Positions 9,155-63,396 of a DNA stretch of 64,000 bases are shown here, piece by piece. The position numbers and the translations under genes were made by a program. The stretch spans positions 434,001 to 498,000 of the forward strand of contig LSRY02000006.1 of the NCBI GenBank assembly GCA_001643675.2. Reading direction: 5' to 3'. Below the pieces are notes generated by a model. The model saw nothing but the letters and a program-made list of their open reading frames with translations, searched no databases and was not told the origin of the DNA. The stretch comes from Monocercomonoides exilis PA203 (Eukaryota; Protista; Preaxostyla). Numbering within the stretch: position 1 is the stretch's first letter; every line of letters begins with the position of its first letter.

Positions 9155-9193
<39 letters not shown>

Positions 9194-11318: not shown

Positions 11319-11349
<31 letters not shown>

Positions 11350-12928: not shown

Positions 12929-13233
12929 GGATGAGTGGCAATCGTAACTTTAATAAGGCACTGCTTTTTCCTGATACTGATGGTATTATTGATCGGAATA
13001 TAGAAAAATGAAGTATTTCTATTATGCAATTTATATCATAAAATATTTTGCAAACATATCGATTTTTCAATCTCAAAATGTTTCGAAAAATAATTTTAAG
13101 GTTATATGATATTAATCTTTTTTTGTTTTTCACTCAAAAAACAAATTAATTAAAATTGAATTATTAAAAAAAGTTGTTACTTATTATTGTTTTAAGTGGC
13201 TGACCTGCAATAATTGCTATATTGAAATTGTGT

Positions 13234-38900: not shown

Positions 38901-39340
38901 ACATCCAACATGCAGCACACTTTTTAAAATAAATTTTTCAAATATTCATTTAATATAAAGGAAAATCAAAACAAGTTTACCTTTTTTCTCCGACAAAAAT
39001 ATAATGATAGAATCCATTAGAACTTGGACGTCCAATGTTTTGTCCAATGGCAATTCTTGAACATGTCCACGAAGATTTCTTCCAGCTTAAAAGATAATAA
39101 AAATAAATGAAAAAATAATCATAAATCCATCAAAAGTACAAACATTCTGGAGGTTCTAATTGGAGAAGTTGATGAGCTCCAGAGCTAAGTCCAACAAGAA
39201 GGAGATCATCTTAACAAAAAGAAATATGCCAATTGAAAATTATCAGACAAAGTCAAACCTCGTATCAAACGACAATATGAAAAATATTGTTTTGGAGGAA
39301 GTATGTACCTGCAAACAGGTTCTAAAGCGTTTATGCTCAT
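32951..39340 (-). CDS. VPS39: Vps39/Vam6-like HOPS/CORVET subunit (CNH propeller, Vps39 repeats, C-terminal zinc knuckle), ~1996 aa, 6 exons
   Basis: Exons 39340-39259, 39209-39144, 39085-38981, 38919-38730, 38629-38324 and 38192-32951 splice in frame through GT-AG introns. The N-terminus MSINALEPV...DDLLLVGLSSG resembles the Vps39 start. Other matches: LIDTSLVEI, QYSILVNFLHQRGLHLEALSML, YLQRLG, FLEFLV...VHNRLALLY, LRLRLINFLKYS, LEEQVILLSKAGQHVEALRLLV...AAEDYC, and CGKC...YHLLC. Vps3/TGFBRAP1 identity is not excluded. Confidence 0.85.
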
Positions 39341-39524: not shown

Positions 39525-42500
39525 ATGGTCTGCAACTCGAATAAAAATTATTTAATTGATTTCACTCCAATGAAATATTTTTAAATTTATATTTACGTGA
39601 AATAACAAATTCAATTTGCGTTTTTTATTTGTAATTCTTTCTATTCGCTGTGTCGGATTTGCTCTTCGCAGTCTTTGACAGTGACGGGAAACAAAGACAT
39701 AAAACTAATTGCACTTAGTGCAGAATGCTTTCAAAAGTATATTTTATATTTTTATTATATTTTTTGTATTTTGTCACATTTGCATTTATCATTTGTAATT
39801 GAAATAGGATCCATGGTCGATCTGATCCAAGAGGATTTGTCACTGTCACAATCGAAAAACGAATGCCATCACATATTGTTTATTGCATTGTGATTAAAGA
39901 AGGAAAAGATCAAACAGATCCCTTGCTTTTTGATGATATTTCCAAAGAAAATGTTGCTATAATTGTATGAAATAGAAATGTTAAATTTACAATTTTTGTA
40001 CTTTATTCTATTCGGACATCAAAATTTAACATATATTTTTTATCAATCAATTTATTTTGATGATATTCAGACCGTGAAAGACAGAACGATAACATTCAGA
40101 GATTCAAGGCAACGCGTTTGGATGTTCAAATTCAGCTCCACGGAAGACGCTTTGAATTTTGCATCAATAATTAAGAAAGAAAGGGAACGAGCAATTGCTT
40201 TAAATAGAGAATCCTTTCTTCATCAGCACGGAGCGAACCAGCAAATTAATCCAGTCGGATTATCATTTCATTCAAAAAATGCTTCGCTTTCAGGGTCAGT
40301 TAAACATGAAGTAAACACAATCGCACCACAATCTCACAGCACTTCTCAGACATCTTCTGTTCATTCATCTGCGCCTTCTGCAAACATGCAGCAAGCCCCT
40401 TCTCATTCTGTTGAACATTCATCATTCAGCGGACCTTCTTATTGTTCGTCTTTATCTCACACTTCTCTTTTACCATTAAAAGACTCAGGCTCATCGGTTT
40501 CATTCAACCAGCGTCAGAATGCAGACATCACTAAAAAGGAAGAGCCTTCGCTTCTTTCAAACAGCCCTTCCTTCAATGACAAAGCACCAGCACATTCTTT
40601 TCATTCTTCTTCTTCGACTGCTCCGTCTTCAAACCAGACAATATACTTCAAAGATGGATTCACCTCCACTTTTTCTTCTTCACTATCGCCCACACTTCAG
40701 TCTTCCTCTCCTTCTTCCTCAACATCTTCAAATATCTCTTCACTTCAGCCAACTTCTTCCTCGTTTCAGACTCAATCTTCATTCCCATCTATGAATACAT
40801 CACACCCACAAACAGCTCCCCAACTCTCTTCATTTCACTACCCCACCGTTTCGAGTGTCAAGCAGCCATCTCCTGCTTTCTCATCATACATGTCGTTTCC
40901 TTCTCCCCTCACATCCTCCATCACTTCAGCCCAGTCACAGCTCAAACAAGCCCCGCAGATGCCTTCTTCTGCCTCTGCCTTCATCTCCACCTCAGCTGCA
41001 ACCTCATTTCACTCATCGTTGCAGGCCCAGGCACAAGTCCAGTCTCAGCTGCAGGCTCCTTCTTCGAAGTTGGCCCAGGCAGCAGCTCAGGCACCTTCGT
41101 CGTCGTCTTCTTCATCTTCGCTTCACACTTCTTCAATGTCCTTTCCTGCAGCTCCATCTTCTGTGCAGATACCTCAGCCAACAGCAGCAGCATCCACACC
41201 TGCTTCAACCTCCACTTCATCTTCATTTCCATCTGCTACTGTCAAATCACAGCCACAACATGTTAACAACGATGCTTCAATTTTATCAAATTCAACAGAC
41301 TCATCGTCATCATCTTCTTCATCGATATCTTCTACTTCTTCAACAAGCACACCACAGCAGCCTCGTTTATCTTCACCGTCTGTTTCAGCCCCGACGCTGA
41401 TGACACCGACAGCCCGCTACAACAGCTCTTTTGCACCCACACAGCGATGGAATGTGAGAGATTTCATTCCATCGTCTGTGATACGCGAGGGAAAAGGAAC
41501 GTGGCGTGCGCTGCCTGGTGATTATGTCGGGGTGAATCTGGCGATATACGAGCAGAACAGGAAGGATGACTCGACGAAGGGAAGGCTGATCTACTCGATG
41601 AGAGACGGGCAGATGCTGAAGGTGCTGCTGCACGACTGGATAGCTGCAGAGGACGCGGCTGCTCTTGAATCAGAGGAGAAGAAGAAAGAAGCAGAAAAGA
41701 AGGACAGAATTCTGCCGAAGCGCAGCGAAAGAGAGAAAAACGAGAAGCCTGTGAAGCGGACTCCGTTTGAGTGCGATACGGCGGAAGAGCTGAAGGAAGT
41801 GGCAGCAAAAGAAGAGGCGCGGATGGAGAGAGAGCTGAAGGAGATGGAAAGAAACGAGAAAGAACGAAGAGAGCGAATTCTCAAATCCCAAAAGGTGTCT
41901 TCTGCTTCGCAGTCGTCATCATCGTCGGCTGGGCAGCTGGGCAGCGGGAGAGAAGACAGAAGAGGAAGAGACGCTGATTCAAAGTCGTATTCTTCATATT
42001 CAATGGCTTCATTGGGCTCTCCCATCCATTCACCGACTTTGGCTTCCCGTCTGCTTCCATCGCTGCCTTCGATTAGCTCAACAGCTTCTGCTTCTGCGCC
42101 TTTCTTTTATTCTCTGTTTTTACCGCCGAATGTTCCGACATCGTTCAAATACAGCCACGAAAGCGACAAAATCCAGGCGACCATCCCAGTCACGATCGAG
42201 CGGTCGATAATTGGGATGAAGAAAGATGAGTGCAGACAGGTTTTGATCCCGCTGTCAGCGCTGGGCCCGCTCTGGACGAAAGAAGGGCCGATTAACGTGG
42301 CGATGAAGCATCATGTGAGGAGAGTTGGAGGAGATGGACATTTGCTGTACACACGGAGAGGAGAAGAGGAGCTGCTGGACATTTGGATGGAAGGGAAGAG
42401 GAAAGGGAACGAAATAGCTGCTAAATACAAAGGTGTGTGATTGGTGAGAATTGTGAACTGTGGATTTCAAACTGTGAAGCTTTTAATTGTTGAATTTATT

Positions 42501-45500
42501 TTATTTTTTTTTTCCCTTTTTTTCTTTTATAACATTTTGTTCACTCATTTTTTTTTCCAACTTATCAACTTCATTTTCTTTCAGTGTGGAGAGATTGTCT
42601 TCATGACCAGAACTTGCCAGAAACTTCTTCTGGTTCAAGCAAAGCTGCACACAATCAACAAAAAGGGAAATCTGGTAGCTCCAAAAAACCCGATGAAAAG
42701 ACACCTTCAAGCGGAATGAAGCAAGAACTGAAGCAGTTGTTAGTCAAACCTAAACGACCATCAAGCTCTACATCAACTTCAAGTTCATCATCTTCATCAT
42801 CTTCATCTTCATCTTCATCAACTTCTTTAGCACCTTCTTCATCTCCTCGTTCAACCTCTCCTTCTTCCTTGTCATCTTTGTCATCTTTGCCTTCATTATC
42901 TTCTCTCTCTTCTCTTTCATCTCTTTCCTCCCTTGCTTCTCTTTCTTCCCTTTCCTCTCTCACATCTTCAGCGCCTTCTTCTCTGTCTTCTTTATTGCAA
43001 CAGCAATCCCTCCAGTCAAACCCTGGTCCAAAATCTGTGTTTCCTTCATTTTACAAATATCTTGTCTCTTTCTTTCCAACCACACTTCCTTATGACAATT
43101 ATGCCTCTTCCTCCTCTTCTTCTTTCGACTCTGCTTTTTCTCTCATTTCTTCTCCTGTCTTTGGCCACTCTGCCACACCTTCAGTTTCTTCCAGCGGGTT
43201 CTTGTCGCCCACGTTCACTTCTTTGGATTACTCAGATCCTCTTTCATCGTTGCTGTCTATTTTGATTGGCGACAGCTATTCAACTGAAGACAACTATCGA
43301 ATGAATTTGGAGGAGGAAAATAGCTCTGAGAGTCGGCAAGGCACAGCCGGATACGACCCGGCAGAGTGTTGTGTTCTGGTTGAAATAACTCTTTTCGGGA
43401 TGAAAAGAGACGAGAAAAACAAAAAACTCACTGAAGATGAGCAGATCTCAATTTCAAACAGAATTTCTGAAGGATATTTGCAGAGAATAAAGAAAGACAC
43501 AGAAGAAAATGTTGTGCCTAATGAAGATGCTGTTTGTTTTTGTGTTGAAGATGTTATGAAGAAGAAGCAACAGAGGTTGAAGGAGATTGTTAAATGTGTG
43601 GCGGATGTGTGGTTTGAACACAAAGAGAAATGGATGGATAAATTGAGGCACATCAAAGAGAGAGAAGACGAAGAAGAGGAAAGAGAAAGAGAGAAAGAGA
43701 AAGAGAAACGGAATGAACGAAGAAGAAGATCGATAAGCAGCAAGAAGGAATTGAGAAGTTTAAGAGAAGACAGAGATGAAAGTGATGAAGCATCAATTGA
43801 AGAAGAAGAAGAGGACGAGGAAGAAGAGGAAGAAGAGAATGAAGAAGAAGGGGAGGAAAGCGGAGAGCGAGACGAATGGGAAATCAGCGACGAAGATTTG
43901 AGGCCAATGCAAAGAACAGAAGAAGCAAAGCTGAAAAACTTGCCACACGGAACGATTTTGATTCTGCGTGAGCTGCTTCGTGTGGAAGATGAGTTTGCGT
44001 TTTATGAGGGACTTTCACCATTTGAATGCGAAAAGGTGAAAAAGAAGTTGGCACAGAAAAGACTGGTTGAATTGATTGATGAAATGGACGAGAAAATGAT
44101 TGACAACATTGTTGGCACAACAAAAGAAGATGAGAAGAAGGAGAAAGACGAAGCTCCTTCAGTTTTGGATGAAGCAGAACAGACGGCCACGACTCCTCTT
44201 CCGCATTCAACTGACACTGCCATTGCAATGCCATCCGCACAACCCATTCAACTGAAAGACGAGCCAAAACCTCTTATCGAGCAGTCGGACACAGATCCAA
44301 ATGCAGTTCAGTTTGTGCCTTTGGAGCCTGTGTCAGCTGCTTCAAGGCAAAATGGCGAACTTCCATCGAATGTTGAATCAACTCCAAACAAGAATATTCA
44401 AAACAATTCTTCATCAATTGATTCACCAAGAGCAAATCAACCAAATAAATCTCCATTGAATTTAGCTAAGATCAGTAATTCAAACATATTGTCTGTTTCG
44501 CCAACAGCGGCTCGTATTCACTCTTCATCAGCTCAGAAGGACGAAACGACTGTTACTTATGCGCTGAAAGTTCGGGCATCTTTGTTCACAGACGGATTGA
44601 AAGTGAAGAGATTTCATCCTCTTTCCGATTACGATGGAACAAAAAACGGAGAGCGTTTGTCTGCAAACTTGTATTCCCCACAAGGAAACAACGCTGGCTC
44701 ATCAAGTTTATCTTCATCATTGCAATCCCTCAGTTTATCTGTTTCATCAAATTATTCTTCAGGAGGTGTTAATAACGCTTCATCGAATGATGGAATTCCT
44801 CAGCCACTTTCAGATGTGGATGAAAAGCCATCTCGTAACAATCGCAGGTCTCATAATGACTTTCAATCAAAAGAATCTGTTCATTCAGCTCTTCAACCTC
44901 AAAAGTTTTTTCTTCGTTGTTTTCAACAGACTGCCGTGAACTGGATGATGAAAATGCATGAGAGGAAAATGAGTGTGGTGCTTGCAGATGAAAGCGGACT
45001 GGGGAAAAGAGCATCAATTTTGGCTTTTTTTGGAACGCTCTCTGCAAAACGCCAACACAATCGTGAAAAAAGCAGCAATTCTTCTCGCGATTCTGCTTCA
45101 ATGGAAGTTGAAAATGCAGCACAGATCACTCAGGGAAGCAATACAGATTTGATGAAATGCAGATATCTTGTTGTTTGTTCGACTCTCGCTGTTGCAAAGC
45201 ATTGGGCTAAAGAAGCTCACAAGTGGTGTCCAAATCAAAAGACAGTGATACTTCTGTTTCACAATGTGGATGAAAAAAATAAAGATGCTGAAAGATATGC
45301 AATGGATGAAGAGGAAGCAAGTTCATCAGTTGAAAAGGAAGTTAAAATGCATAAAAAAGATGGAAAGTTGGGAATGAATAAGCAATTATGTGGTTTCATT
45401 GGAAGCAACAATGGTTCCTTACATCGTGTTGTTATGAAGGAATCTCCATTTAGTTTGTTTGAAGCTAGCTTGAATGAAGAAGCAAATAGAATGCCAAATA

Positions 45501-48500
45501 TTTTCGCAAATAAACGTAATGCATCATCTGAAACACAGCATTTTCACAGTGATGATGCAATAAACTATTTATCAATACCAATATCTTCTTCAATGACTTC
45601 GAATCAACTATCAGCAGACAAACAATCACTTATTTTATCTGAAGATTGCGAAGAGTGTATTTTCATTCTTCCATTAAGTCTTCTTTCACAAACTTTATCT
45701 TCAACAATTCTGAACCCCGAATTCGCAAAATGGTTTAACAATAAGAACGACAACATCCAATTATCACAATTTATCAACAAATCTTTTGTTAATTCGTCCA
45801 ACGACATTTTCTCAGAGAGTGCAACTGCTCAGAAAGATGAGCATCCTGTAAAATCTGATCCAGACGGGTTGCTGTTCCCATCATCAACAAGTACTTCTTC
45901 GTTGTCTTTTTCAACCACTTTGGAGAGTAAATCGCAAACACCATTGCGAAACTCTTCCACCCTTTCAAATGGATATGATTTGATGCAAAATAAATTCGGA
46001 AAATCTTCTTCGACATCCACAACAGTTGCATGCTTACTCGATTCAATTCTCAGTGTGAATCCAGAACTTCTGTCATTGCAGTCAATCAACTGGGATACGA
46101 TTGTTCTTGATCTTCATCATCGACTACAGGAACTCTCTATCAATGCATCAGTTCAGATTCCATCTATTCCACAGCTTGAGACTCGAATGAAATGCATTCA
46201 AAAAATCAAAGCACACAATTTGCCATTTGAAAACAACAATGATGCAAATAGTTCATCATTTGCTCAAAGCAATTTTAATGAAATTATTTCTCAATTTGAC
46301 TCAATAATCTCCGAAGCTGCACTTGTCCATCCCTTTTTAGCTCTCACAAAATCTCAGCAGCGTATTATCATTCTTCGACAGTCGCTTTCTGCTTTGTCTG
46401 TGTCGAGCTTCCATCTTCTTCGAGGAGAGAAAATTCCTCGATGCATTTATCAATCAATGAAGAATGCGAATCCTTTAACAACAAAAGAAAAATATTCAAT
46501 TTTTCCAAAAGAATACTCTTTTAATGCATTAAATTCTTTTTCTTCAATTAAAAGAAAGCTGAAGCGATATTCTGTTGCTTCTTCCAACAACTCCAGCGAA
46601 AATGAACCAACAAAAATTGTTCCTCCATCATTTTTCAACAAATCTGAGTCTCTTTCTGCTCTATCATCATTGTGCTCTATTTTCTCACTGCTTCTTCTTC
46701 TCAGACCTTCTGCTGTGGTTGTCTCAAAGATGACACAGCAGCCAATCATAACAGCCAGACTCACACAATTTTCCAATGGCCCTCTTCACAAGCGATCTTT
46801 TCCAAAACTTAACTTGAATTATTTGAGACATGCAGAAAATTTAAGAGAATACAAATCACACGGAAGAGCATTTCAAATGAAGAAAGATCCTAAACTCCAG
46901 CTTCGCATTAGAGGACAGATTCCTGGGCCATTAGGAATCGTTACAGACAACTGGAAGCTTAGCAAGCAGCTTTTGCTACAGTCTCGAAAGGGAAGAAATA
47001 CATTCCACAATCAAAACAGAACTGTAACTCGACTTTATACTGATGGTAATGGATCGATACAAAAAGTTATCAAACAAAATCGAATTAAATCAGCTGGAAA
47101 TGACAGATCAACTTCAGATGATTCGCAAAAGCAGGTTGCATCTTCCCCAGCGAATAATTCTTTGAATTCTTTATCAACCAGCAAGACATCGCAAAATCAG
47201 CAAACTGGGAATGTGAATAATATTTCTTTATTTGGAAAACAATTACATGATTCTCCAAAAGTTGTGTCATCGTCAAGTTATCAAGTGAATGAAAACAGTT
47301 ATGACAGAACTTTGAATACACTGAAAAAGAAAGCTGCTTTTCTTTCTCGGTTTATCACTGTTGATGCATCACAAATAATGCTGATGTTGATGCCATTTAT
47401 TCTCAAACGACGATGGGAGGATGTAGAGTCACAGATTGTGAATCCAACTCAAGCATTCTCTTCAGCTGCATCATTTCCTCAATCATCAACTTCATTTGAT
47501 TCATTGGCAAACAGCTCCCCTGTTCGCCCTATTCGCAATACAGCTGGACAGGTTTCTGCAAGTTGTAATGAAGTTCAATGCTTGGCCAAGTCAAACGAGA
47601 ATTTATTTTCAAGAACTGAAAATTCTCATCTATTAACATCGCATTTTAACACTCATAAGTCTGCATTAACATTCCATTTATTTCGTACTCCTTTGAGCGA
47701 TTCACAGAAAGAGCGTTATTTGAATGAGTTGCAATTTTTTGAGAGAAAGATTCTGCCTTCACTGAATGAATATACCACTCAATGCAGAAACGCTGAGGAA
47801 TTCAACAGAAACAATGGAAATGAATGTCAAAACAGTTTGTGTGCAATTGATAATAAAGCCAACTCAACAAACAATTCTTGCACAAAGACAAAGAAATCAT
47901 CAATTTCTTTTTCTGACGCATTGCAAAAAGAAAGGGACTTGCTTGCATCTGTTGTGACAACTCAATCACGTCTTCATGCAATCACAGTCACTGGATTTCC
48001 TTCGTTTATTCCTCAGTCTCAAGCAGATACATCTTTTCCAAGGAAAACTCGTCCAATGTCTTTTTTAATGCCTTCTCAATTTTATTTTTATCAGCCTTTT
48101 TTCGATTTGACAAAGAACAATTTAGATACATCCATTGCTTCAGATTTGCGAAGGAAGATTTCAAGCGTTCCGGTCATCTTTCCATATCTTTCTGCTCAAT
48201 GCGATGAAGTCAGCATTTTTCAGTCAAATGTTTCTCATCCATCAAACCAATCAGTTTTTTCTATCAAATCTCTCAGCATTCTCCAAACTGCTTTGTGTCA
48301 TTGCAACAACAACTTTAATTTATCTTCAGAATCGTCATCCCCCCTCCGCATCCCTTTCCATGCACGCAGCGCAATGAAAAAGCTTCTTCTTTTTCTTCCT
48401 TCAGCACTTCGGTCTCTTCTCACTCTGACTTCAAGGGATCTTGCCAGTACTGCATGGGAACATGGAATGTCTTATCTCTATTCAGTTTTTTCATTTATTC

Positions 48501-51500
48501 CACAAGCTGCACCAACACACAATTTATCACATAGAATCACAGAGCTTAATTCAAATTTGGAAGAAGATGATCAGTTGGATGACAGTCGAATGGACTCTGA
48601 AGACGACGAACAAAATGAATCAAAGGAAGATGAAGAAGAATTTGTTTATGTGGAAGACAAAATTGATGATCACTTCGTCTGTTTCAAAAAAACCAGAGCG
48701 ATGGATATTGATTATGAGATAAGCACGAACAAAGAAAATTCACGATCATCATCAAAAGAAAATGGAGATTCATCCAACGAGTCAATTGCAATGGAGATTG
48801 ATGAAGAGGAAGTTAATGAAAGCAATTCGACAACAGATGAACTTGAGCTTGAAATGAGCAGATTATCAAGGACACAACAAAAGCGAAGTATCGTTTCTCA
48901 CAACACTTCTTGTGTGACTTCAACAATTCTTTCTCCAATTTTTGGATTGGATTGTTTGAGGGTGATGATGTTGCCTTCACAACCGATTAGCTTACTTCCT
49001 CATTTTGATAACAACTCTTTTGAACGCGTTATTCAATGTTCTGACGAATACATTGAAACATCTTCTCAATTAAAAGGCTTGCCCAAAGTTAGGGATATGT
49101 CAGGAATATCATCATTCGGTCTTTCTTCATCTGCACATCCATTCAATTCACATATTTCCTCACTTGTTTTTGGGCATCCAGTTTCATCTTCCATTCGCAT
49201 TTCTCAGTCAGAGCCAGCAGGATCAAATTCAAAGAAATCTGGCTCTGGTCAATCAAAAAATGAAAAGTCAAAACAATCTCAGAATGAAAAATCAGAAAAG
49301 AAATCCAAAAAAGTTGGCTTTTTCATGGGAGGATGGAAGAAATCACCAAGTGAGAATCAAGAAAAAGATATTCCTGATGTTCATGGAAACTCAAATTTCC
49401 ATTCGCAAACAGAACGTTCAGCCTCATATATTCAATATATTGACAAGATCAACAATCACTCATTATCTACAATCAATCCTTTATTCACAATATCTCAATT
49501 GAAACTATTCAACTTGTTTAAATCTCCTATTCTTCTCAGTGCATTTTGCGCTGATGAAGGAGTGCAATCTCTTCATCATCTTAATCTTTTGTTGAACAAA
49601 AGAGAACAATTAGAGAGTTATTCTTTTGAACATTCTGGCAATTCCTCAACACAAAAATCATCATTTGCTTCGCACAATCAGAAACATAAATCAAATCAAA
49701 TTGCTGAAGTCACACCTTCAAATGCTCATCATTCATTCTTTAAGAATTCGTTCGCAATGAATTCCTATGAACCTCTGCGGTTTAATTTTTCAATTTCAGA
49801 AATATCTCACAATCACGAACTGTTCTTGAAAGAAACACAACTTGAATCATCAGAATTATTTTCCTCAGTTAACGATACATCCAATAAAATCGAAAGAAAA
49901 ACGGATTCTTATGGAGTTTACAGCTCACAAACTTTACCACAAAATTCAAAGTCCGTTAAATTGTCAAGCAGTCCGCAAAAACGCAAAAATTCAGATTCTC
50001 AAAGAGAAGTTGAAAAATCAGATAAAAGCCCAGAAATTTCTAATAAATACCAAAATCAGCTGAATATAAGGCGCTTTTTACAGCCTTCTTCAGCATTGCT
50101 CCCATTCTTTTCTCGAAATCGGAATTCTTCTCCAAACTCTGCTTTGTTTGCAGCCTCGACAAAACTGCAATCGTTGTACACACTTTTGCACTCATGTTGT
50201 GGTTTTAAGGAGAATTCTTTGATATTTTCGAATGTTCCTCTTTCTCCTGCTTCTTCATCAAAAACTATTCATACAATTAATTCGTCAATTAATAATAATA
50301 AAACAAATCTTTCAACTTCTTCAAAGCAGCAATCTCGAGTTCTTGTGTTAACATCAACAGATGCTTCATTTGAACTTGTGTCATCTTTTTTGACAGCTGT
50401 GAATATTCCGTTTTATCAGTTTTTTCCGTCAAGCTATTTCAGCCAAAGTGAAAGCTCATCAAATAAGTCTTCTCATATGAACTCTATAAAGATGGATGTT
50501 GATTCAGAGAATGAAACAATACACGCTAACAACACATCTTCAATGACGAACTCCGAAATGGCTCAACAAAATGAATGGATTTTGTCTCATGCAGATCGTT
50601 TGGAATCATTTGTGTTACTTTGCTCTCTAAATTCTTTCGAAGACGAGCTTCAACTCGAAAGCACAACTCATAAAAATCTTGTTTCTGTTTCACTTTTCAC
50701 CACGTTTTCCAACACAACACCAGAGATGCTCTTCCATTTACAGAAAAACAGCCGTGTTTCTGCAGATGCATCTCGATCTTCTGTTATCCCCACGTATTTT
50801 CTTGAAGGTCTTCATCTTTCAGCTGCAATTGTGTTTGATCAGCCTCCATCACCTGAAGCACTTCTGAGATCATATGCATGCTCACCAGTTGTGCATAGAG
50901 AGGTTCCAACATTCAAAAACTTAACTATTTCTGGTCAGATTTCATCGAAAGATGAAAATAACTCAAATGCTGAAACGAAGTCATCATATTCTCTTATTTC
51001 TTCTTCTGGCAATGAAATTGCATCGTTAACAACGTGCAATCCTCCTTCCATTATCAATGCTCGAATTGCAAACCTTTTCAAGCGTTTGTGCTGGACACAG
51101 TGCAAATTAATTGATGAGCAATCTTCTTCTACTGATCAAGTTTCTCAAGATGATGTGAATCAAGGGATGAGCATCTTTGTGATTGTAGCATCAGACACTT
51201 TGGAAGAAGGAGTTAATCCATTGATTCAAAGCAAATCTGGAAAGCTGCAATTGGAACAGGATTCATCAAAATCTTCATTGCTCCATGCTCTGAATGCAAG
51301 AGATTGCCCCAAAGACAAGTTGATTCAAACACACAAGTTATTATCACAGCGATGCTTTAACTCTTCAAATTCTACAGATACTGTTCTGTCTCGAACATTC
51401 AGAACTTTGTCATCAACAGTTGCATCGACTTCGTATTTTCATTCGTTTTTCGCTCATTCTTTTGATTCTCTTGCTCGTTTAGAGAGAAATGGATGCTTTA

Positions 51501-54500
51501 ATCCAATAATGCATATTGGTCACTATTCATCTTTCCCATGCACTAACTCAGCTATGCTAACTCCATTGCAAATTAAGAATAACAACATTCTCCGTTTCAT
51601 TCAAATGTCATTTTATGCATCCATTTTCTATTCCACGTTCCAGTTCCTATCAAGGACACATCATCCTTTGGTCACTCTACACGAAGTGTTTAATGGAAGA
51701 TCACTTTTATCGACTTCTTATTTATCCCAGCCGCTGAGGCCATTAAACTCTGTAAACATCACACGGCCAATGTCAACATTCGATTTAGCATCTCTTGCAC
51801 TTGCCAATCCATCTTTGAGAACAAACTTTTCTGTTAATGCTTTATCACAGACAGCGCATTCAATTTATTTGATGAAAAAGTCTTTGCGTTCACAGCTTGC
51901 GCTTCAGATTGCTCGAATTGTTTTCTTTTTCATGAACCCTGATGAGTCAGCAAAAACAGATATATGCGCTCCAAAGACGAAACAAGAACTGCCAACTGTG
52001 CTGAACTCAAAAGAAAAGCAAAGCAAGTTGACAAAAGTGGACAAATTAGATATTATTGAAAAGTTAAATGAAAAGCAAGGCTCGCAAATGAATTCAAATA
52101 ATGGAGATATAATTCAAAATTCCGATTCAATCTTTTCATATCTTAGCATCTCCCAGTTTATAGGAGCAGCAACTGCAATTTCAATAGCTACGCAATTCGT
52201 AACATTTCTTTCTGACAATTTCTTGCACTCAGATTCTTCAAATAGCTCTTCACAATTAATATTGTCTCCTATTTCTCCATCAAAGTTTGCCTCTGCTGTA
52301 AATGTCTCTGTCACTCCTTCATCAATTCATTCAATTGCAAAGTTCTTCTCATTCAATCCAAAGCAGAATCTAAATTTGGCTTCGTTGGATGTTCATCGCT
52401 CCATGGAATTTGTGTTTCATAACTCGGACGCTCTTTCAGCAAAGAGAATTGGAAAGCATTTGAAGGGTGGTTGTACAGCAAATCAAGAAAGTATTGTTTC
52501 ACTTGAAGTTAATCCTTTGTCTTCGGCTCCTTCAATTAAACATGGAATCAATAGCGATATTATCTGCTCAAAAGAAATCAATCCAAATAGCTTTTCTCCC
52601 CTTATTCAGTCTCCAAAAAGTGCTTCTGATGAATTAAAGACACAGTTAAATAGCTCAGTGAACGTTGAAAACGAATTAATTTCTGATTTTAAACAGATGC
52701 TTAATCGAGGAAGAGTGGAACTTGAATCGTCTAAGCATTCTATTTCTGAAATTTTATCAACTGCTTCACAATTTGTTCCATTTAGTGAAGGAGCAAAGCC
52801 TGCGAACAAACCTCTGCCTCTTTCTCTTCTTCCTCCTTCGTTCACTCGGCGTTTGTCAGCCTCTCAGAAAATGGCTGGTTTCATCAACAATCGGTTGATA
52901 TGCTCTCTTGAAACGAAACTGAAACAGCTTGCAATTTCAAAAGTTGCATTGTTGAATGAAAACCAGACTAAGCATAAGAACATCAATTCTGCTGATTCTT
53001 CTCAGATTCAAGAGCCACAGCATGCTAATGATTCTGAAACATCTTCATCTCCATCAAATATGGAATTGGATGATAAGACGAAATTTTCAACAACAGAAAC
53101 ACAACCAAATGGAATGATAGCAGACAATGAATCTTTACAAGCATCAGGCCAACCATCAACTCAATCATCAACAGAACAATCAACTTCGTCGAACTTGATT
53201 AATCCAATAAGCCAAGATAACAACTTACCTACTGCTTCATCCAATTTAAATTCCGATTCTTCTGTTGTAACTTCTGATGCAGCCGCGCAGCCACAGAATC
53301 AACAGCCTTCAGAGACATCTTCTTTGAACAGCGACTCCAGCAATCACAACACAGAGACGGATGATCCTTTTTCAAGTGATGAGCAGCCAACTGATTCGTT
53401 GAAAGAAGAAAAAGATGCAAACAAAGCATCTTCAGAAAGTGTTGAACCAGCTGCTTCTTTGGATGTGAAAGACATTCAAAAAGTGATACCAAATGAAAAT
53501 GCAATTTCTCAAGATGAGCTGAGGAAGCTGTACGAAGCAATTCTTACCATTCATCATTCTGTTGAAGCATGGAGACAGTATTTCTTCGTCAATCCACCTG
53601 AAATTTCATTCAATCACAGGCATACTAATTCTTCTGAAAACAACAATTTCAGTGGACAGTTAAATCATTCAAGAAAAATGCACAGACTTTCTGTTTCTCC
53701 ATATGCAAGTGCACCTCAAAGGTATCTTCTTGAGAAGAGCATACAATTTGTGGGAGAATCATCGCTTTTCGTTGGATCAGTTGAAAGAGGATTATCACAT
53801 CTTTCAATCAAACAAAAGAGGCCTGTAAGAAAATCTGAAATTTTGGAGCAAAAAGAACAAGAAAATGAACTGAAAAGACAACAAAAGCAAAGTTATCAAC
53901 GAGTTCTTCAGCAAAAGGAGTATAAGATGAGTTCATTTGAATTGCAAGATTTGCCTTCTGATTCTGATGATTCATTGTGGGACGAAGCAATTACAGACAG
54001 AGCAAACAACAACGGAATTGTCAAGCGACTCTCTCGTTTGTCTTTAACACCTGAACTTCTGATGAATACAGCAGACAAAGAGAACGTACTTCATTTCTCT
54101 GCCTCAACTCCTTTATCCTTGTTTATCCTTCCTGTTCTTTTGCCTTCCTCTCTGCTGATTGGCAGCAACCTCCGCCTCTCATCCCTTGACGAGGTTCCCA
54201 AGCGCCGTGCTCAGCTGTCAATGATCGTTCTTAAGCGCCTTCAAGAAGTGAAAGCGAAAGGCGAAGACGCTCTTCGTAGTTTAATTGCAGCACATCCAGC
54301 GTCAAGGTCAAAGCAGCAGCCTGGAGCTATTTCAATGGATGCTCTGCTGTCTATAAACTCAGAAAACAAGAAGGTTGCTCGACTGGCCGAAAAAATGAAG
54401 ACAAAAATGATTGAAATACAGACGCAAGCGTTTATTGCAAGGGAATCGAGGAAAGAGAATGCAATGAGGCAGCAAATGAAGGAGAAAATGAAGAAGCAAA

Positions 54501-57500
54501 GCAGAGTTGATCGAAACAAGCTGGTCAAACAGCGATCGAGCAGAAGACTGCGAGAAATAGAGAACTATGTGGCCCCTTGGTCGGATGTGTTGAACGAATT
54601 TAACCGGAAAAGCAGCAAGCAAAAGAAGATGTCTCCACATTGCTTTGTGTTCAAGTCACTTCTTCAGCACTTCAACGCATCTGAACTTCAACTGCAGATT
54701 ATTCTGATTTATTATTCAGCTCTTTATTCAGATTCTGCTGCCAAGCGCAGTCTATTCCATCCAAAGGCTTCGCATCCACAGTCATCGAAGTTCAATGCAA
54801 GCAATGGAAGATCTGCTTTATCGCCTTCTTCGCCATCTGCTTCAAATAGTCTGATTGTTTATTCTCCTGCTTCCTCCTCTTCTTCTCCTTATTCAGCGGC
54901 TGTCACATCCTCTAATTTGATGTCAAATCAAAAGAATTTTGAGCTCTCTGCCAAAAACATGTCAAAATTGCTGCGATTCGTCGAATGGTGCTTCTCAAAG
55001 AAGTACAACCCCCATCTTTCAATGATTTGGAGGACAAGAGTAAGGGATGCTATCACAGAACTGAACAAAAAACCGCCTGTGATGCTGTTTTTGGATCATC
55101 CGGATGTTCTGGAAGTGCTTGTTGAACTGATAATGGAAAAGGACGAGGCAGAAAAGAGAGAGAAAGAGATGAGCAACGACAAAAAGACTAAAAGAGACTC
55201 AAATCAGCGTTTCTCTTCTCGTTCTACTTCTCCTTCTCCGTCTGCAACAACATCACCTTCATCTTCTGTTATCTCTCCTTCGAACACATTCTCCTCTCAA
55301 AATGGTTCATCAACTTATTCTCAAAGATCTCACACTCCATCACCTCCGTCTTCATCCACATCTCTTCCTTCATCTGAAACAGCACTCCTTTCAGACAGCC
55401 TCTGGACAGTTAGCAACATCCCTGCCAACTTCACGCAAACAGCCAATCCACTCACTGACTTCTCTGGAGTTCCTGGTCTCTACGTCAAAAGAGCATCACA
55501 GCAAAACCAGTTGAAGTCTAGTCAAATGACTTCGCTGCATTCAACAGGCAGTTCATATCTGCACCCGGCAACGAGATTGTCAGGACAGCCTTTCTCGTTG
55601 GAGAGTGGATCAGCTTTATCTTATTCATCTCGGTATTCGTCAGGAAATAATTCATTGGCATCTGCTTCATCAACATCAGCCATGCTGAAAAGCCTTCCTT
55701 CTTCATCTTCCCTCACAACGCAGCTGTCTTCCATGCTTACCACTCCTCTTTCCTGCGCCATCATTCAATCAGCAACAGCCTCACAAGTTCATCTTGCTTC
55801 ACCTTCCACACATCATTTGTCTTCAAAGTATCACTACGCCATCTCAAATTTCAACAACCTGATTGCAAAGAGAAGAGCAGACGGACACGCTGCTCCTGTT
55901 TTGTCTGAGCCAGGCGACTATCCATTTGTTGCATCGCGTGTGCAGACACGAACAGGCGGAAGACGCACTCAGCAGGCTGTTGCTGCAGTTGCTGCATTGG
56001 CTGCGTCTTCTTCGTACTCTGTGGAAAGCGCCCAGAGATCGCTGGAGCTTCCAGCGTATCCTGCTGCTGCATCTGTGCCTATTAATTCGTCTGGCAATTA
56101 TGCAAGAGGCAATTCTTCAGCACTTTATTCAACAACAGCCACTTCTCCTGTACCTTCTGCACCATCAATTTCTCCCATGTCATCTTTGAGCGGTGCCACT
56201 TCAGCATCTGTCACTCCATCATTTGTGTCTGCACCTTTTTCACTTTCAACGTCGCCTGATCCAAATGCTGCTGATTCTTCATTATCTCCCTCATCTTCTG
56301 GCCTGTATGAAGACCAGTGTGATCCTCTATCTTATCGCAGTGGTTTAGCCCAGGCTATTAACACAGCCATCCGAGCAGCAAACAGCAGAATCAAAGAAGA
56401 AATGGAGCGATGTGGCATTTCTGAACCTTCTCTGCTGAATGAAGAGAATCCATTTGCGTATTCTTCTTCTTCTTCTGCATATGAAGCAAATGCACAAAAC
56501 AGAGCATTTGTACCGTCTTTGGAAGCTTCGACAAGAAATCATGAAGGAAATAACAATACTTGGCAAAACAACAGAAGTGGTTCTTTGAATCAATACTGTT
56601 TGGGATATGTTAATTCCTCAATGCTCAAAGGGTTTGGATTGGGTATTGATGAAGAAGATGAAGAAGACGAATATGATATTGATGATGAAGACGAAGAGGA
56701 AGATGATGAAGATGAAGATGAAGAGGAGGAAGATGAAGAAGAAAATGATGAAGCGAATGACTTCTTTGATAATAACAAGAATGATATTTCTCAAACAAAG
56801 AAAAATGGAAAATTTGGAGAGCAAAGCATTCAAATGGAAGAGGACGTCAAAATTGCATTGCCTCAGAAAACAGAAGAAGGAAATGTTTCAGTGAAATCAG
56901 AGTTCAATTCAGCTGTTTCTTCACCATTTGCGTCAACTTCTCTTTCAATTGCACCTTCTGCATCCAGCAAGGTTTCTATTCCTTCTCCTTCTTCAATCTC
57001 CTCTAAGTTTGCTTCTCCTTTATCCCCATCTGAGCTGAGGCGCCTGATGCACACCGTCCCCTCTCCTTCTCGCATGCTTTCTTTGGGAGATCATCTGCTT
57101 CTTCCTCAGTTCGCATACATATTTTCGCGCGAGCAGCATCTTTTGCATGAAATGTACAGCAAAACAGCACCAGCTCCAAAGGACGAACACACAAACAGTC
57201 CAAAGGAAATGCCAAAGTTTGCTGTTCCGCCGTTGAATTCATCATCGATTCGCTTTGTGGACGATGCATCTGTATTCACATCTTCGTTACTGCTCGACCA
57301 GAAGTCCTCAAATGGTTCAAATGTCAAATCTTCGAATTCAAAGCACAAAAGCATAAATGCATCCTCTTCTCAGTTAATTTCCCACTCTCATTACCAAGCC
57401 CTCTTTTCAGACCCCAACTCACCTTCTTTGGACTCTTCTTCTTCCTCCTCTTCTTCTTCCTCTGATTCATCTCCCAGTGCATCCTCAACACCTGTTGCAT

Positions 57501-60346
57501 CTGCAACACCAAAGTCCTCCTTATCGTTTACCTCTGCCTCTGCCTCAATTGCCGTATCGCCTCAGCTGTGTCTGGAAAAATGCGACAGAAAACAGCTGGC
57601 GTGCGACCTGTCCACACAGCACGTGTCTTCGCTTGCTGCTCTTTTCGAGGCGCAAAAGGCGATTTGGAGCAAAGCGACGCTGTTGAATGCAGAATTGATG
57701 GAGTCGCTGAACGAAGCAAAGGCAAAGAACGAAATGGCATTCAACAACTCCGTTCGCGATCTGATTAAACAGATATTGGCTGAGCTTAATGAAGAGAAGA
57801 AGGAAAGAAGCCAAACATCTGCTACATCTTTTGCTTCAACTATTTCAACAGTCAACAATGAAGCCACTTCGGCGATGGATAATTCTGTGGTTCCTCTGGC
57901 AAGATCACGGCCAGCGTCTCCTTCACCTGTTGGTCTATCATCTGCTTCGGCTCTTTCTTCTCCTGCTTCTCCTTCTCCTTCTCCTTCTTTATCACCTTCT
58001 TCAACTCAATCCGACTTCTCAAACTCTTCTGCTGGTTCAACACAAATTGCATTGTTGTCAAAACAGAAGAATGTGAATGATGGCTTAATCGAAAAATCTG
58101 CTGATCTGCCAAAAATACGAACATTTTTCTTTGGCGGGTCACATGGTTATCCAACATATTCATCATTCAGCAATTCCAATGAAATGGATCAATCAAATCC
58201 AAACAATTCATCCAGCTCATCTTCTCAAATTGTTCCTCTTCGATCATCAATTAATAACAGAAACAGTCAGAACTCTTTACTCCGAGTGTACAACTTATCA
58301 TTGCATTCCCCCATTCGTCAGTCAGTTTTGGGTCTGCCTCCTCCAATCGTGCGCCGCCGCATCCCTCCGCAGATTGAAACTGCCGAACAGCAGCTGCTCC
58401 GAGCAATGAAGACATTTGTCATTTCCACAGTGCGAAAGGAGATCTGGCGGAACACACCTGCCCAGCTTGGATCGATCTTGTCTAACTTGTCAGAAACACA
58501 GCGAGAGCTGGTTAGTTCTTTGAAACCTCCGCCTTTTAGCACTTTGAAGGTGTTTGGGGTTCAATCGCACCAGAAACAGCAGAGCGGCAGTCAATTGCAT
58601 GGAAGAAAAGGAGCAGAAAAGATGAAGAAGACAGCTGCTGGTGGATGGCAGAAGAGGCGAGCCACACGCCAATCGCAGGACGACAGCGAAAGAGGAAGCA
58701 GAGGAACTGGAATTGGCGCGGGTGCAGCCTCAGGTGCTGATCAGAGAGGAATGTCTGGAAGGAAAGTGGGAACGAAAATTCGGATCACATCAAGAGGAGA
58801 CAGAGAAAAGCGGACACTTGGCTTGACTACGCAGGAGAACGACGAAGAAGCGCTCTTCGCAAACAGCCCGACACCTTCTGAAAGCACAGCCGCTGCATCT
58901 TCTGCAGATTCATCAGCTGGCTTGGGTACTTCCAGTGCGCATGCACCAGCAGGTGCTGAGAAGGCTTCGGCGTCTGCTATGAGGCAGATCCAACAGCTGT
59001 CGGATCGGAGATTGATTCCATATGATTATCTGAACGAGGCACTGAAGAAGGAATCAGCTGAGCTTATAAACAAACTGAAGCGCATCGACACACCTACTCC
59101 TCTGCTCTATCGCTGGGTCAGAGCAACGCGCTGGATGAAGAATGCCATCCGTGGATTTGTCGTGACAATACAAGAAGCTCCAATCGTCACCAATCTGATA
59201 GCTCCTCAGACTCAGCCCAAAAACGGGAATGTGATGAACAAGCCGCAAGGCAGTCAGCCTAATCCAAATGGCTCACCAGCATCTTCTGCCTCATCTGCTG
59301 TCTCCACTCCTCAAAGCACCACACTTTATCCCAATCCAAATTTAGGCCCTTTGGCAAACAGAAATCTGCAGCAACCTTCAAATGCTGCTGGTTCATCCAA
59401 TCCTTCAATGAAAGCTGCTTCTTCTTCCTTGTCTTCTCTGAAGCTCTCAACAACCGAGCAGCAGCCTGCTTCTTCTTCAGCATCAGCCTCACCTTCTCAA
59501 TCTCCTCAGACTCAGCCTCGCATTCAGCGGAGAATTGTGACTAGATACATGCCGTACATGACTGTATACACTCCTCACGGCACCATCAGCTCCCAAACGA
59601 AGGGATTCCGCTGGTATCCTCAGGCCGACTTCAACAGATACTACGAGGCGCTGTGTGGAACGACGTTTTCAACGCCTGCTGTTCCTTTCACTCACTCGCT
59701 GCTGTCGCGTGCTGCACTTGCCCACTACACCTCCATTGGCGATGCTTACTGGCAGAAGGCAAAGAACATTTCTGGTGTGAACTACTTCCGGAAGTTCTTC
59801 GACTCTGCCGTTGAGATCTCTGCTGAGGTGAACAGGGAGATTGCCAAGTATGCGAGTGCTGAAGGGAAGGTTATTCTGACGCGGGGGATAAGAGGATGGG
59901 AAGAGGACCTCAGCAGAGAAATCCAGCTGCAGCGGGAGAAGCTGCCGGCGGGGACGAAGCTGAATGTGGATTACCTGCGGATGATGAAGGTAAAGTCCGC
60001 AAAGATCAGAGAGGAAATGGAAGTATCGCTGAAGAAAAAGAAGGAGAGAATTGCAGAAGTTGAAAAGGAGAAAGAGAGGCTGACAACTCTGTTGAGCATC
60101 ATTCTTTCTCAGATCGGTGATAAAATGGTTCAGGAAGGACAAATGACAAATGAGAAAGAGCAGATGAAAAATGATGGATCAGCTTCTACAGCTCCGTCCT
60201 CTCCAAACGCATTACCTGCAAATACCAATCAGCAAGAGATGTCAAATTCTTTATCATCTTCAGCATCATCATCATCTACTTCTTCTTCTTCTCAAAACTC
60301 TGCAAATCCAACTGCATCTTCCACAGCTGCATCTGCTCAAAACATG

Positions 60347-60378
<32 letters not shown>

Positions 60379-63361
60379 TGCATCGCCAACTCAATCTCAA
60401 TCTCCATCATTAGCATCAACACCAGTCTCGCCAGCAGAGTCATCAGGCTCTTCAACCCCAACGACTCCATCGCAAAATCAGACTCCAACTCCAAATGCTA
60501 ATGCCAATACAAATGCTTTTGACAGAGCCAACTCACCAACAACCGATCAAAAGCCCTTCCCTTCGATGTCCACCCTCATTTCCTGCATCGAGCCGTCCAA
60601 CCTGCGCCTTCTGTCAGCGCTGAATGTGATTCCGACCGAGGCGCAGATTGCGAAGTACCGCCACCGTGTGGAAGACGAGACGCTGGTGCAGGCCTTCAAA
60701 GAGCGCATGATCGACGCTGCACAGCTGAGCGACCTGACCGTTGCGTCGTGTGTAAAGTGGCTCAACAGCTACCTGCGCTCCACCACCAACGCCATGATCA
60801 ACTATCTCCCGCAGTTCCCGCAGCCGTTCAGCACGATCCAGACACGGTCATTGTCGTCAACAGGATTCAGACAGAGGACAGACAAACTGGCTTCGCACAG
60901 AATGTACTTCGAGAAGATGCTTAATGATGTCAGATATTCTCAGCGGAATTTGAGTCAGCAGGCGAAGCTGGCTGAAAGCAAGGCTGCTTCATCATCTTCA
61001 TCTGGATCTGCATCTGCATCTTTATCAGCTGTTAGACTTGTGCAATCACCAGCTTCGGTTTTAGGCGGTCTTTCTTCATCGCCTTCTCCTTCAGTGACAG
61101 TATCCACCTCTTCTGCAACAAGTTCGAGTTTGACTTCGCCTTCTCCAACATCCTCGCCAAATCCTGCAATAACATCACCTGAGCCAACATCTTCTCCTCT
61201 TCAATCAACTCCACAGACTGAAAAGAAAGAGCTGCAGACAGGAGCAACTCCTTCAACAGATGCGCTTTCAAGACAGAAATCAGCTTCTCCTTCGAATGTC
61301 TTCCAGTCTTCGTCGCCTCTACAGCCAACAATAGTGTCTGACTCGTCGTTGGCTCAGTCGTCCTCCACCCCTTCTCCTGCTGTGGAGAATGCAGCAGAAC
61401 AATCCAGTGCTCGCCCAGCAAGTGTTTCATCTCCTTCTTCGTTGTCTGTCTCTCCAGCAGCACAGCACAGCTCTCAATCTTCGCAGCAAGCTTCTCTTCA
61501 AAAACACAATCAGGTGAATCCAATGAGGCAGAATGTAATGCCCCAAACACAAATTTTGGAATTCTTGCTTGCTCATTCAGATTTTGCTTCAACTGGCAAA
61601 AGCGCAATGCCTCGAACTTCACCTCTTTTGACAGTCCTTTCAACAAATGTGAATTCGACCTCTGTTTCATCCATTATGTTCAACCATGCTTCATCTTCAT
61701 TGTCCTCTACGCCTTCTGTGTCTTCTCAGCATCTGAAGTCATTCAGTGATGCGGGAGTGTCGATCAGTCCGTTGGCGTCGTGCACGCCTTTGCACGGCAC
61801 AGGAACTGACTCGTCAATTGATGTGCCTGCTGTAATCACTGCTGCTTCTGCTGCCAACAAAGCAAATGCTTCATCGTCCTCATTGGCGATTTCTCCACCT
61901 CCCTCCTCTCTTCAGGTTTCTTCTCTTTCTTCACTTTCTACCTCTCCATCTACAGCAAGCATTAAAAGTGAAGAATCTGCGGTTCCTTCAACAACACCTA
62001 AAAATGTTGAATCTATTAGCTCGGAAACGCCAAAGTCTGAAAAATCTTCTTCTCCACTCACAATTAGCTTTTCCTCTCTTCTGCCTGAATCTGCAAATGC
62101 ATCGTCGTTATCTTCATCATCTTCTTTGAGCATCGATTCATCGGAAATTGTTTCAGAGGCATCGCAAGATGCTTTACAAAGGCAAATTAATGAAAGGAAG
62201 CTAATGATTGGAAGAGGCAAAGGAAGAAAAGGAAGAAAGCAACAGAACCAAAAATCAGAAGAAATTGATGTGCAGGAAATAAGTAGTGAATTATCAGCAA
62301 CGGAAATGAATAAAAATAGTAATGCTTATAATGGTGATGTTTCAACAGCCGATGAGGATAGCGATGTTAACAGCGAAAAAGAAGAGAGAAGCAAGAAAGG
62401 AAATAACTCAGAAAATAACCAAAATGAAAATGATGGAAAGTTAAGAAGAAATAAAAAGCACAATGAAAAGGAAGAGAATAAAAACGGACAGAGAAAAGCC
62501 GCTTTGCAGGAGAAGCAGAAAGATGATTCACAAATTTGGGACTTGAGCAAAGAAAATCACTTACTGATTTGTGATGTGGCTCAATACAGCGTTTGGGTAT
62601 CAATGGCAGATCAAAATGCAAGCAGCAAGGAAACAGACTCATTTTCATTCAGAAACAGCAATCTTCCCAAGTTTGCTGATTCCATAAGGTTCTCATTTAC
62701 TGCTGATCAGTCATTCGCCCAGCTCTTCACGCCTCTGATTAATCACCAGCTTCAAGTCGCGTTTGCCAAGCAGATTTCTCAAATAGCATCATCTTTGCTG
62801 GTTTCACAGCGGGGCGTCTCGCGCATTCATCTGGAAATACTAAGACGAGGAAAAGTGCCTTTCCCACTTCCGAAGCGTCTGACTGCGTTGGAGCGGGCGA
62901 TTGTCCTTCTGCTGGAAATATCTCTGTGTCTTCTGCAGAACAACCATCTGCTTCCGCCTGCTGTTGTTTCGATGCTGCTGTCATTGAAGGAACTGCCTGG
63001 TTGTGGGAACTTTGTTGATCGTTTGGTTGAGATTATTCCTGCTGCGATGAGAGAAATAGCAAGCAGTGCATGTCCTGTCAAGATGCTCAAAATAGCTGAA
63101 GATGCCACCCCGCAGATTGGTGGCTCGAGTTTTGATCGAAGCTATCGGAGAAACAAGAATTCAGATGAAAATGATACGAAAGTTGAAAGAAATACAGAAG
63201 CAATCGAAAAATTAAATGGGAATAACAGCTCTTCCATTGCAGATTCATCAAGGAAAGATGGGAAATTAAAGAGGCATCTACCTTTCTCTTCAGGTTCCTC
63301 AAAATTGTTTCAAATAGAATCAGCACTTGCAAATTCCCCAATAACAACCTTGTCATCATCA

Positions 63362-63396
<35 letters not shown>

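Follow-up and report, generated by a model that had tools for sequence, protein, structure and literature searches.

A stretch of 64,000 nucleotides from Monocercomonoides exilis PA203 (contig LSRY02000006.1 of assembly GCA_001643675.2, positions 434,001 to 498,000 of the forward strand) carries what is quite probably one giant multi-exon gene, the product of which would join an FKBP15/WAFL-like head to a Ser-rich tail holding a decayed Snf2 N-lobe, and would work as a non-enzymatic scaffold. The whole of this stretch is the window of what follows and equals G000:C58:434001-498000 in the genome-wide scans, which covered the 82,301,135-base assembly with its 101 contigs. A first-pass annotation of the locus had seen in it an FKBP15-like module fused to a chromatin remodeler of the SWR1/p400 type; the FKBP15-like head and the fusion have stood, and the SWR1/p400 type, a working remodeler and the processed polyprotein offered beside it have not.

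The FKBP15-like head

For the predicted N-terminus, a module of the FKBP15/WAFL type with a WH1/PH-like and an FKBP-fold domain is supported by way of three paralogues in the same genome, here called C47, C50 and C14 (Table 1). The first 276 residues of the C47 frame, its head, return exactly two families with hmmscan, WH1 (E-value, E, 0.0025) and then FKBP_C (E 0.0036), both of them sub-threshold, and a genome search with this head, which leads to C50 and C14, reaches the window itself at E 0.135 in the part bearing the GMKK motif. In each of the three paralogues the whole WH1-FKBP module lies in one open frame, and a Snf2 match was found in none of the three. Coiled-coil frames of about 600 residues follow the head in C47 and C50, and C14 has large acidic inserts inside its FKBP-like domain. 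The window copy is the most divergent of the four family members.

A profile of the three paralogues was scored, with filters off, against all 1,396 six-frame open reading frames (ORFs) of the window, and the window exons were searched singly and not as one joined protein. The 39963-42437 frame ranks first at E 2.2e-18 (profile positions 55-94, 112-184 and 184-210), and the 39803-39967 frame, colinear with it, ranks second at E 0.015 (positions 6-50). In BLASTP the 39963-42437 frame matches C47 at three colinear places, with E 6e-7 for the GMKK part, 3e-5 for 41457-41714 and 0.026 for the WH1 part; the Pfam WH1 match at E 0.044 came from 40068-40220 and is below the curated cut-off. A second profile, made from the tail of the paralogue modules (the last strand and the next helix), finds 43352-43513 at E 4.9e-10, the runner-up of 1,650 chunks scoring 0.85, and BLASTP relates the same part to C50 (41% identity over 46 residues, E 1.6e-5) and to C14 (E 0.003), so that the last strand and an NKKL...EQ helix are common to the window copy and the three paralogues.

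Structural modelling of C50 points the same way. The AlphaFold input alignment for C50 held the paralogues and window pieces only and no canonical FKBP, and the model has a predicted local distance difference test (pLDDT) score of 75-91 in the first domain, which has six strands and a helix, and of about 60-86 in the core of the second. The top 27 matches of this model in a Foldseek search of the PDB are FKBP-type proteins at probability 0.99-1.0; FKBP51, FKBP12 and AtFKBP53 are matched at probability 1.0 with a template modelling (TM) score by target of 0.50-0.59, and the Foldseek match to the EVH1 domain of Homer2 has a TM by target of 0.62 and a root-mean-square deviation of 2.0. The first row of an ESM Atlas shape search with the model is "FK506-binding protein 15", covering both domains, and is a weak match with a TM by query of 0.38. 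The FKBP15-like N-terminus first read by eye is in this way borne out transitively, through the paralogue profiles (E 2.2e-18 and 4.9e-10) and the C50 model.

Within the window copy the module is much interrupted. The linker between the WH1-like and FKBP-like domains (40197-41456) is far longer than in C47 and C50, a charged insert of about 155 codons precedes the 42183-42263 part of the FKBP-fold domain, and after the FKBP-like domain there are about 250 charged helical residues and not a long coiled coil. Counting back from GMKK without gaps, the pocket tryptophan position of canonical FKBPs is Ile in both the window and C50, and peptidyl-prolyl isomerase activity is doubtful because this ungapped register puts Ile there. 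Searches of the homologous-protein database with the C50 module and with the 39963-42437 frame gave no match. A PDB phmmer search with the FKBP-like pieces gave nothing but one match to the Myb-like domain of TRF2 (window 41433-41543, E 0.4), which overlaps the FKBP-like start and was judged to be chance; it indicates how easily short motifs mislead when read by eye.

The Snf2 remnant in the giant exon

The first-pass annotation had also placed the last FKBP strand inside the giant exon that carries the Snf2 motifs, and the tail profile puts it there, at 43352-43513 (E 4.9e-10). Since the FKBP-like domain lies on both sides of the 42433-42584 intron and ends in the Snf2-bearing exon, the fusion is genuine at the DNA level, and the claim that more than the splice model stands behind it is supported. 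A last strand at about 42270-42310, within the 39963-42437 frame, was tried as an alternative and would have left the fusion on the splice alone; it was dropped, the paralogues placing the strand at 43352-43405. The linker at 43856-44900 is single-copy in the genome, so there is no repeat to invite mis-assembly there.

From the FKBP-like helix (43,513) to Snf2 motif Q the frame is free of stops for some 470 codons, and the Snf2 N-lobe begins about 1.5 kb into the tail. It matches Pfam SNF2-rel_dom with 49 bits, where the Pfam cut-off is 24.9 (E 3.4e-12 in the genome scan), a local Snf2 profile scores the stretch from motif Q to motif Ia at E 3.4e-17, and the invariant Q, W, L-DE-GLGK, W, E and P columns are kept. 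Motif I, within 44981-45010, reads GLGKR, where all aligned relatives have GLGKT, and an insert of about 40 residues separates motifs I and Ia. PDB phmmer matches cover about 45 residues round motifs Q and I with a best E of 1e-5, in the order Fft3, ISWI, Rad26/ERCC6, SMARCAD1, and then p400 (2e-4), CHD1 and SRCAP (0.007). An exhaustive HMMER search of 44699-48298 against 1.84 billion representative proteins gives a best E of 2e-10, over motifs I to Ia only; its leading matches are ordinary Snf2 proteins, the best of which also carry the motif I-Ia insert, and neither an orthologue of the window protein nor that protein itself was found among these 1.84 billion. Of the ESM Atlas feature searches, one was without a usable match and the other gave generic SNF2 only.

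Downstream of motif Ia the ATPase fades out. Neither motifs II and III nor Helicase_C have a Pfam match in the giant-frame pieces at E<=10. The C-lobe motifs IV-VI proposed earlier could not be recovered, there being no Helicase_C match and, for 50273-51250, no PDB Snf2 match at E<=10; a single-sequence AlphaFold model of 49958-51250 is uninformative (pLDDT 32.6), and heavy divergence could be hiding a Helicase_C remnant. The local profile leaves colinear traces at a candidate degenerate motif II and past motif III (Table 1), and one of E 1.7 at about 50123-50233, just upstream of the proposed C-lobe. Such weak traces are not relied on, because the same profile gave a spurious match of E 8e-4 in a charged region. 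With GKR in its Walker A motif and DLHH at the candidate DExH site, the ATPase looks dead, and a working remodeler is for that reason unlikely.

Relatives of the Snf2 lobe

Within the genome it is the C16 gene whose N-lobe comes nearest to that of the window gene (E 5e-8 in the genome search, 8e-9 by BLASTP), followed by C25 (6e-8) and C13 (9e-7), the differences being small. The motif I-Ia insert is common to the window and C16, and C13 and C25 are without it; ERCC6L2 has an insert at the same place. The N-lobe of C16 carries further charged inserts, and C16 itself scores best against ISWI (8e-78) and INO80.

C13 and C25 are canonical SRCAP/SWR1 genes, matching yeast Swr1 at about 1e-192 to 1e-196, and so the genome does have another SWR1, as the first-pass annotation had asked; because these two are there, the window gene is not the cell's SWR1. 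Both have open frames of more than 3,200 codons and 4-5 kb between the ATPase lobes, and C13 holds the genome's only above-threshold HSA match. Several Snf2 genes of this genome have their lobes 4-6 kb apart, and with such spacing so common a long inter-lobe gap is not diagnostic of the SWR1 type.

Exons, introns and extent of the gene

On inspection of splice signals and frames the gene would have at least four coding exons, with a tentative fifth upstream, and about 9,400 codons, and would be one very large gene. The short exon at 39672-39736 probably supplies the WH1-like domain with its first strand. An ATG exon at 39172-39300 as the 5' end of the gene is a guess; in the paralogue loci the tentative 5' exons had no significant tblastn match. 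The exons flanking the three proposed introns have 34-48% G+C as against 15-26% in the introns, and the published mean for M. exilis introns is 119 nucleotides and 27.6% G+C (PMC8767320). With 39965-40070 spliced out, the DIS and FRD motifs stand 21 residues apart, exactly as in C50. The 42433-42584 intron connects the 39963-42437 frame to the giant frame, and is required because the middle of the FKBP-like domain must join its last strand; the phases are compatible, exon 40071-42432 leaving one base and 42585 being the second codon base in the giant frame.

Four RNA runs of one study, of about 60-65 million letters each, contain 0.92 of the sampled words of 39600-45599. By our own arithmetic introns and junction-spanning words account for about 8% of the interval, so 0.92 fits full exons with the introns absent. 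This is weak support, because the runs are labelled 'synthetic metagenome, metatranscriptomic' and are kept as contigs.

The stop-free frame runs from 42533 to past the window end at 64000, 8,541 codons in all in the ORF scan of the genome, and is terminated in the next 6 kb of the contig by a TAG at window-equivalent 68156-68158 (G000:C58:502156-502158). The standard genetic code (table 1) already yields the long frames of the window. For the gene the first-pass annotation had given the range 39672-51250, of which the start exon is kept; the end at 51250 is too early, as the frame is open until the TAG about 17 kb further on. The giant exon, of about 25.6 kb, holds most of the gene. The rest of its frame, about 5,500 residues, matched no Pfam family; its C-terminal 1,000 residues match only themselves in the genome and are without a paralogue, and acidic patches are present at the C-terminus. 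The peptides on which the earlier reading was built were all recovered as typed in their frames, except the first, SAECFQKIHGRSDPRG, which crosses the first splice: its two halves are visible in separate printed frames and it has no single-string match.

Table 1. Features of the window gene, with its paralogues and the Snf2 genes compared with it. Positions are window coordinates unless a contig is given.
Feature	Position	Strand	Basis or remark
Tentative first coding exon (ATG; GTATGT donor next)	39172..39300	+	inspection only; phase fits exon at 39672
Short exon ending ...ECFQ(K)	39672..39736	+	AG acceptor 39670-39671, GT donor 39737; inferred
Intron	39737..39807	+	71 nt, GT-AG, 15.5% G+C
Exon, N-terminal half of WH1/EVH1-like domain	39808..39964	+	paralogue profile positions 6-50, E 0.015
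Peptide YCIVI	39881-39895	+	located in translation
Intron, phase 0	39965..40070	+	106 nt, GT-AG, 18.9% G+C
C-terminal half of WH1-like domain (last strands and helix)	40077..40196	+	Pfam WH1 E 0.044, profile positions 81-109
Peptide stretch TITFRD...	40086-40160	+	located in translation
Ser/Ala/Pro-rich low-complexity linker, about 420 codons	40197..41456	+	translation, composition
First half of FKBP-fold domain	41457..41714	+	paralogue profile positions 112-184, E 3e-7
Peptide VIREGKG	41478-41498	+	located in translation
Peptide ALPGDYVGV	41508-41534	+	located in translation
Peptide GRLIYS	41580-41597	+	located in translation
Middle of FKBP-fold domain (GMKK...IP motif)	42183..42263	+	paralogue profile positions 184-210, E 8e-6
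Peptide IERSIIGMKK...	42195-42251	+	located in translation
Intron	42433..42584	+	152 nt, GTGTGT...TTTCAG, 26% G+C; contains in-frame TGA at 42438
Giant last exon	42585..64000, on to window-equivalent 68155	+	8,523 full codons, 18% Ser, no stop
Last FKBP-fold strand and conserved next helix, within giant exon	43352..43513	+	tail profile E 4.9e-10
Peptide PAECCVLVEITLFGMK	43358-43405	+	located in translation; frame shared with Snf2 motifs
Charged/acidic helical region where paralogues and FKBP15 have coiled coil	43514..44300	+	translation
Snf2-family N-lobe, motifs Q, I, Ia	44921..45277	+	Pfam SNF2-rel_dom positions 1-91 of 290, E 5.9e-13
Candidate degenerate motif II, DLHH for DExH	46091..46120	+	colinear local-profile match E 0.24 (45986-46153); weak
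Candidate remnant past motif III, LRRxKxDV-like	47288..47626	+	local profile E 0.012-0.025, colinear; weak
Previously proposed C-lobe (motifs IV-VI)	50333..51250	+	not detectable
Paralogue C47	G000:C47:1962128-1964227	-	700-codon frame; weak WH1 and weak FKBP_C in genome scans
Paralogue C50	G000:C50:293774-296119	-	genome search with C47 head, E 5e-33; indicated earlier by genome scans with WH1 and FKBP_C
Paralogue C14	G000:C14:2438447-2443762	-	genome search with C47 head, E 2e-11; 1,772-codon frame
C16 Snf2 gene	G000:C16:645882-651488	-	complete SNF2-rel and Helicase_C; motif I-Ia insert about 40-45 residues
C13 SRCAP/SWR1-type gene	G000:C13:127242-137000	-	human SRCAP E 1e-213
C25 SRCAP/SWR1-type gene	G000:C25:2168003-2177998	+	human SRCAP E 1e-227

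Neighbouring frames

The divergent upstream neighbour, on the minus strand at window 32954-38233, is a 1,760-codon frame with matches of the Vps39 and Vps41 type (HOPS/CORVET tether); that such an endosomal gene adjoins an FKBP15-like gene may be coincidence. Further off, a 2,527-codon frame at 5369-12949 (-) has a calcineurin-like phosphoesterase domain at its N-terminus, and frames of 2,612 codons at 18731-26566 (-) and 811 codons at 2-2434 (+) each end in a partial protein-kinase domain.

Weighing the readings

Several points tell against an FKBP15-like head in one chain with the Snf2 remnant. The Pfam FKBP15 model PF23649 has no match at E<=10 on C58, C47, C50 or C14, and is likewise unlisted in the hmmscan of the C47 head; Pfam searches of the window pieces and the FKBP_C scan of the genome give no FKBP match in the window at E<=10, and a profile built on ten of the genome's canonical FKBPs gives the window pieces only p 0.02-0.09. 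Because the window pieces are insignificant against canonical FKBP profiles, the FKBP assignment is transitive through the paralogues. The splice junctions and a single transcript from head to Snf2 part are predictions from the DNA, there may be more introns within the giant exon, or an internal promoter, and the RNA runs may be mock-community or simulated data and not independent evidence of expression. No orthologue turned up in the databases searched, and all that is said here of function is inferred.

It is these points on transcription that an arrangement in two units would draw on, with an FKBP15-like gene consisting of the head only and a separate giant Snf2-like gene started from an internal promoter and methionine. 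The head would then stop at the TGA at 42438 by intron retention, or end soon after 43,500, and the giant gene would start for instance near 43907 or 44084, in which case the shared frame would not mean one protein. There are in-frame methionines for such a start at 42716, 43301, 43400, 43556, 43634, 43907 and 44084, the three paralogues do without a Snf2 part, and the splice junctions, like the head-to-Snf2 transcript, are predicted from DNA. We nevertheless regard two units as decidedly unlikely: the last FKBP strand and its helix are in the giant frame (E 4.9e-10), so that a protein ending at 42438 would be short of a core strand; about 470 codons are open from 43,513 to the Snf2 motifs, with no stop before 68156; and a boundary at 42441-42715 would leave 275 nucleotides for a 3' untranslated region (UTR), an intergenic spacer and a 5' UTR, for which the published M. 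exilis means are 312, 1855 and 62 nucleotides respectively (PMC8767320). An artefact, whether a joining of unrelated loci between 43,400 and 44,900 or a chance Snf2-like match in low-complexity sequence, appears very improbable. The assembly is based on Oxford Nanopore (ONT) reads, and polished (PMC8767320), simple sequence is abundant in the region, and the significant Snf2 stretch is only about 120 residues long; yet the linker at 43856-44900 is single-copy, the frame runs through it without a stop, 92% of the 39600-45599 words are present in RNA-derived contigs, and the Snf2 match stands at 49 bits against its 24.9 cut-off with the invariant motif columns in place.

The reading as a working SWR1/p400-type remodeler equipped with an FKBP/acidic histone-chaperone-like module, or as a cleaved polyprotein, is largely refuted, and we give it hardly any credence. 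It has in its favour that the start of the Snf2 N-lobe is real, that p400 and SRCAP are among the weak PDB matches, that acidic stretches follow the FKBP-like domain and that the N-lobe and the proposed C-lobe stand far apart, as they do in split-ATPase remodelers. Against this, for the HSA helix implied by the first-pass annotation a Pfam scan of the window gave no HSA match (E<=10), although the same scan does find HSA in C13, and the window gene is equally without a Helicase_C match; its Walker A is GKR and its candidate motif II DLHH; Fft3, ISWI and Rad26 outscore p400 and SRCAP in the PDB phmmer search; its motif I-Ia insert is shared with C16 and not with the SRCAP-type genes; and C16, its nearest paralogue, is not of the SWR1 type. 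Long inserts are frequent in the Snf2 genes of this genome, which deprives the inter-lobe gap of diagnostic value, and the canonical SRCAP/SWR1 genes exist elsewhere, on C13 and C25. The FKBP-like domain is moreover of the FKBP15 type and not of the nucleoplasmin-FKBP (Fpr3/4) type. For a histone-chaperone-like module serving a remodeler, or for processing of a polyprotein, no evidence was obtained, and nothing points to protease sites.

Probable history and possible function

As to how the gene came about, most likely read-through joined an FKBP15-like paralogue to a Snf2 gene lying downstream or next to it, whose nearest surviving relative in the genome would be the C16 gene. After the fusion the ATPase would have decayed. 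Where the paralogues have their coiled coil, the frame continues for about 8,000 more codons, mostly Ser-rich. The protein so formed would be a non-enzymatic scaffold, in which the WH1-FKBP head may act, by analogy, as FKBP15 does, with the endosome, the WASH complex and the actin machinery, and in which the Snf2 remnant would be at most a binding surface, without ATP hydrolysis if GKR and DLHH are as they seem. A stronger proposal would make the product a single chain of about 9,400 residues and a giant scaffold specific to this lineage, in which an FKBP15 head of the endosome/WASH/actin type has recruited a catalytically dead Snf2 lobe for binding; it is speculative and on the present sequences rather unlikely. 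Were it true, it would give the first case of a Snf2 pseudo-ATPase linked to the machinery of membrane traffic and not to chromatin; conversely, through the fusion an FKBP15-type head might enter the nucleus.

Provided that the predicted chain is made, the FKBP15-type WH1-FKBP module with a Snf2 remnant is an undescribed domain combination, a full-text literature search having returned no paper linking the FKBP15 type and Snf2 beyond unrelated gene lists. The locus would then be a clean example of a gene fusion followed by decay, leaving a pseudo-enzyme in a giant low-complexity protein. A four-member FKBP15-like family in Monocercomonoides bears on endosome and WASH-type traffic in an amitochondriate flagellate. 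For annotation, the labels SWR1 and p400 are to be avoided at this locus; C13 and C25 are the genuine SRCAP/SWR1-type genes. The practical weight of all this is modest.

Comparison with known systems

With SWR1, SRCAP and p400 the window gene has in common only a generic Snf2 N-lobe start and a long distance to the proposed C-lobe. It differs from them in being without HSA, SANT or a detectable C-lobe, and its matches to SRCAP (E 0.007) and p400 (2e-4) extend over 45 residues only. Likeness to the C16 Snf2 ATPase goes further, through motifs Q, I and Ia and the insert between the last two; C16 is complete, however, whereas in the window copy GKT is changed to GKR, motifs II-VI fall short of significance and a Helicase_C match is missing.

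Among its own family the window copy stands apart from C47, C50 and C14, none of which has a Snf2 part and all of which keep the module in a single open frame, although C14 too has large inserts, acidic ones, within the FKBP-like domain.

The known protein closest in plan is the metazoan FKBP15 (WAFL, FKBP133), in which a WH1 domain (69-171) is followed by an FKBP domain (178-290), a coiled coil and an acidic C-terminus, and which is an endosome-associated protein with the WASH subunits strumpellin and SWIP as binding partners (PMC2850539). In sequence the similarity of the Monocercomonoides family to it is sub-threshold (WH1 E 0.0025-0.044; FKBP_C E 0.0036, in a paralogue only), and PF23649 is matched by no paralogue. 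The window copy departs further from it in having hundreds of low-complexity residues between the WH1-like and FKBP-like domains, an FKBP-fold domain itself broken by long inserts and an intron, and, in place of the coiled coil, a tail of about 8,000 residues with the Snf2 remnant. In contrast, the order of parts in the family is the same as in FKBP15, a WH1/EVH1-like domain, directly an FKBP-fold domain and then a charged helical region; C47 and C50 follow the plan of WH1, FKBP and coiled coil, and the C50 model matches FKBP and EVH1 structures in the PDB, with an FKBP15 cluster as the top row in the ESM Atlas.

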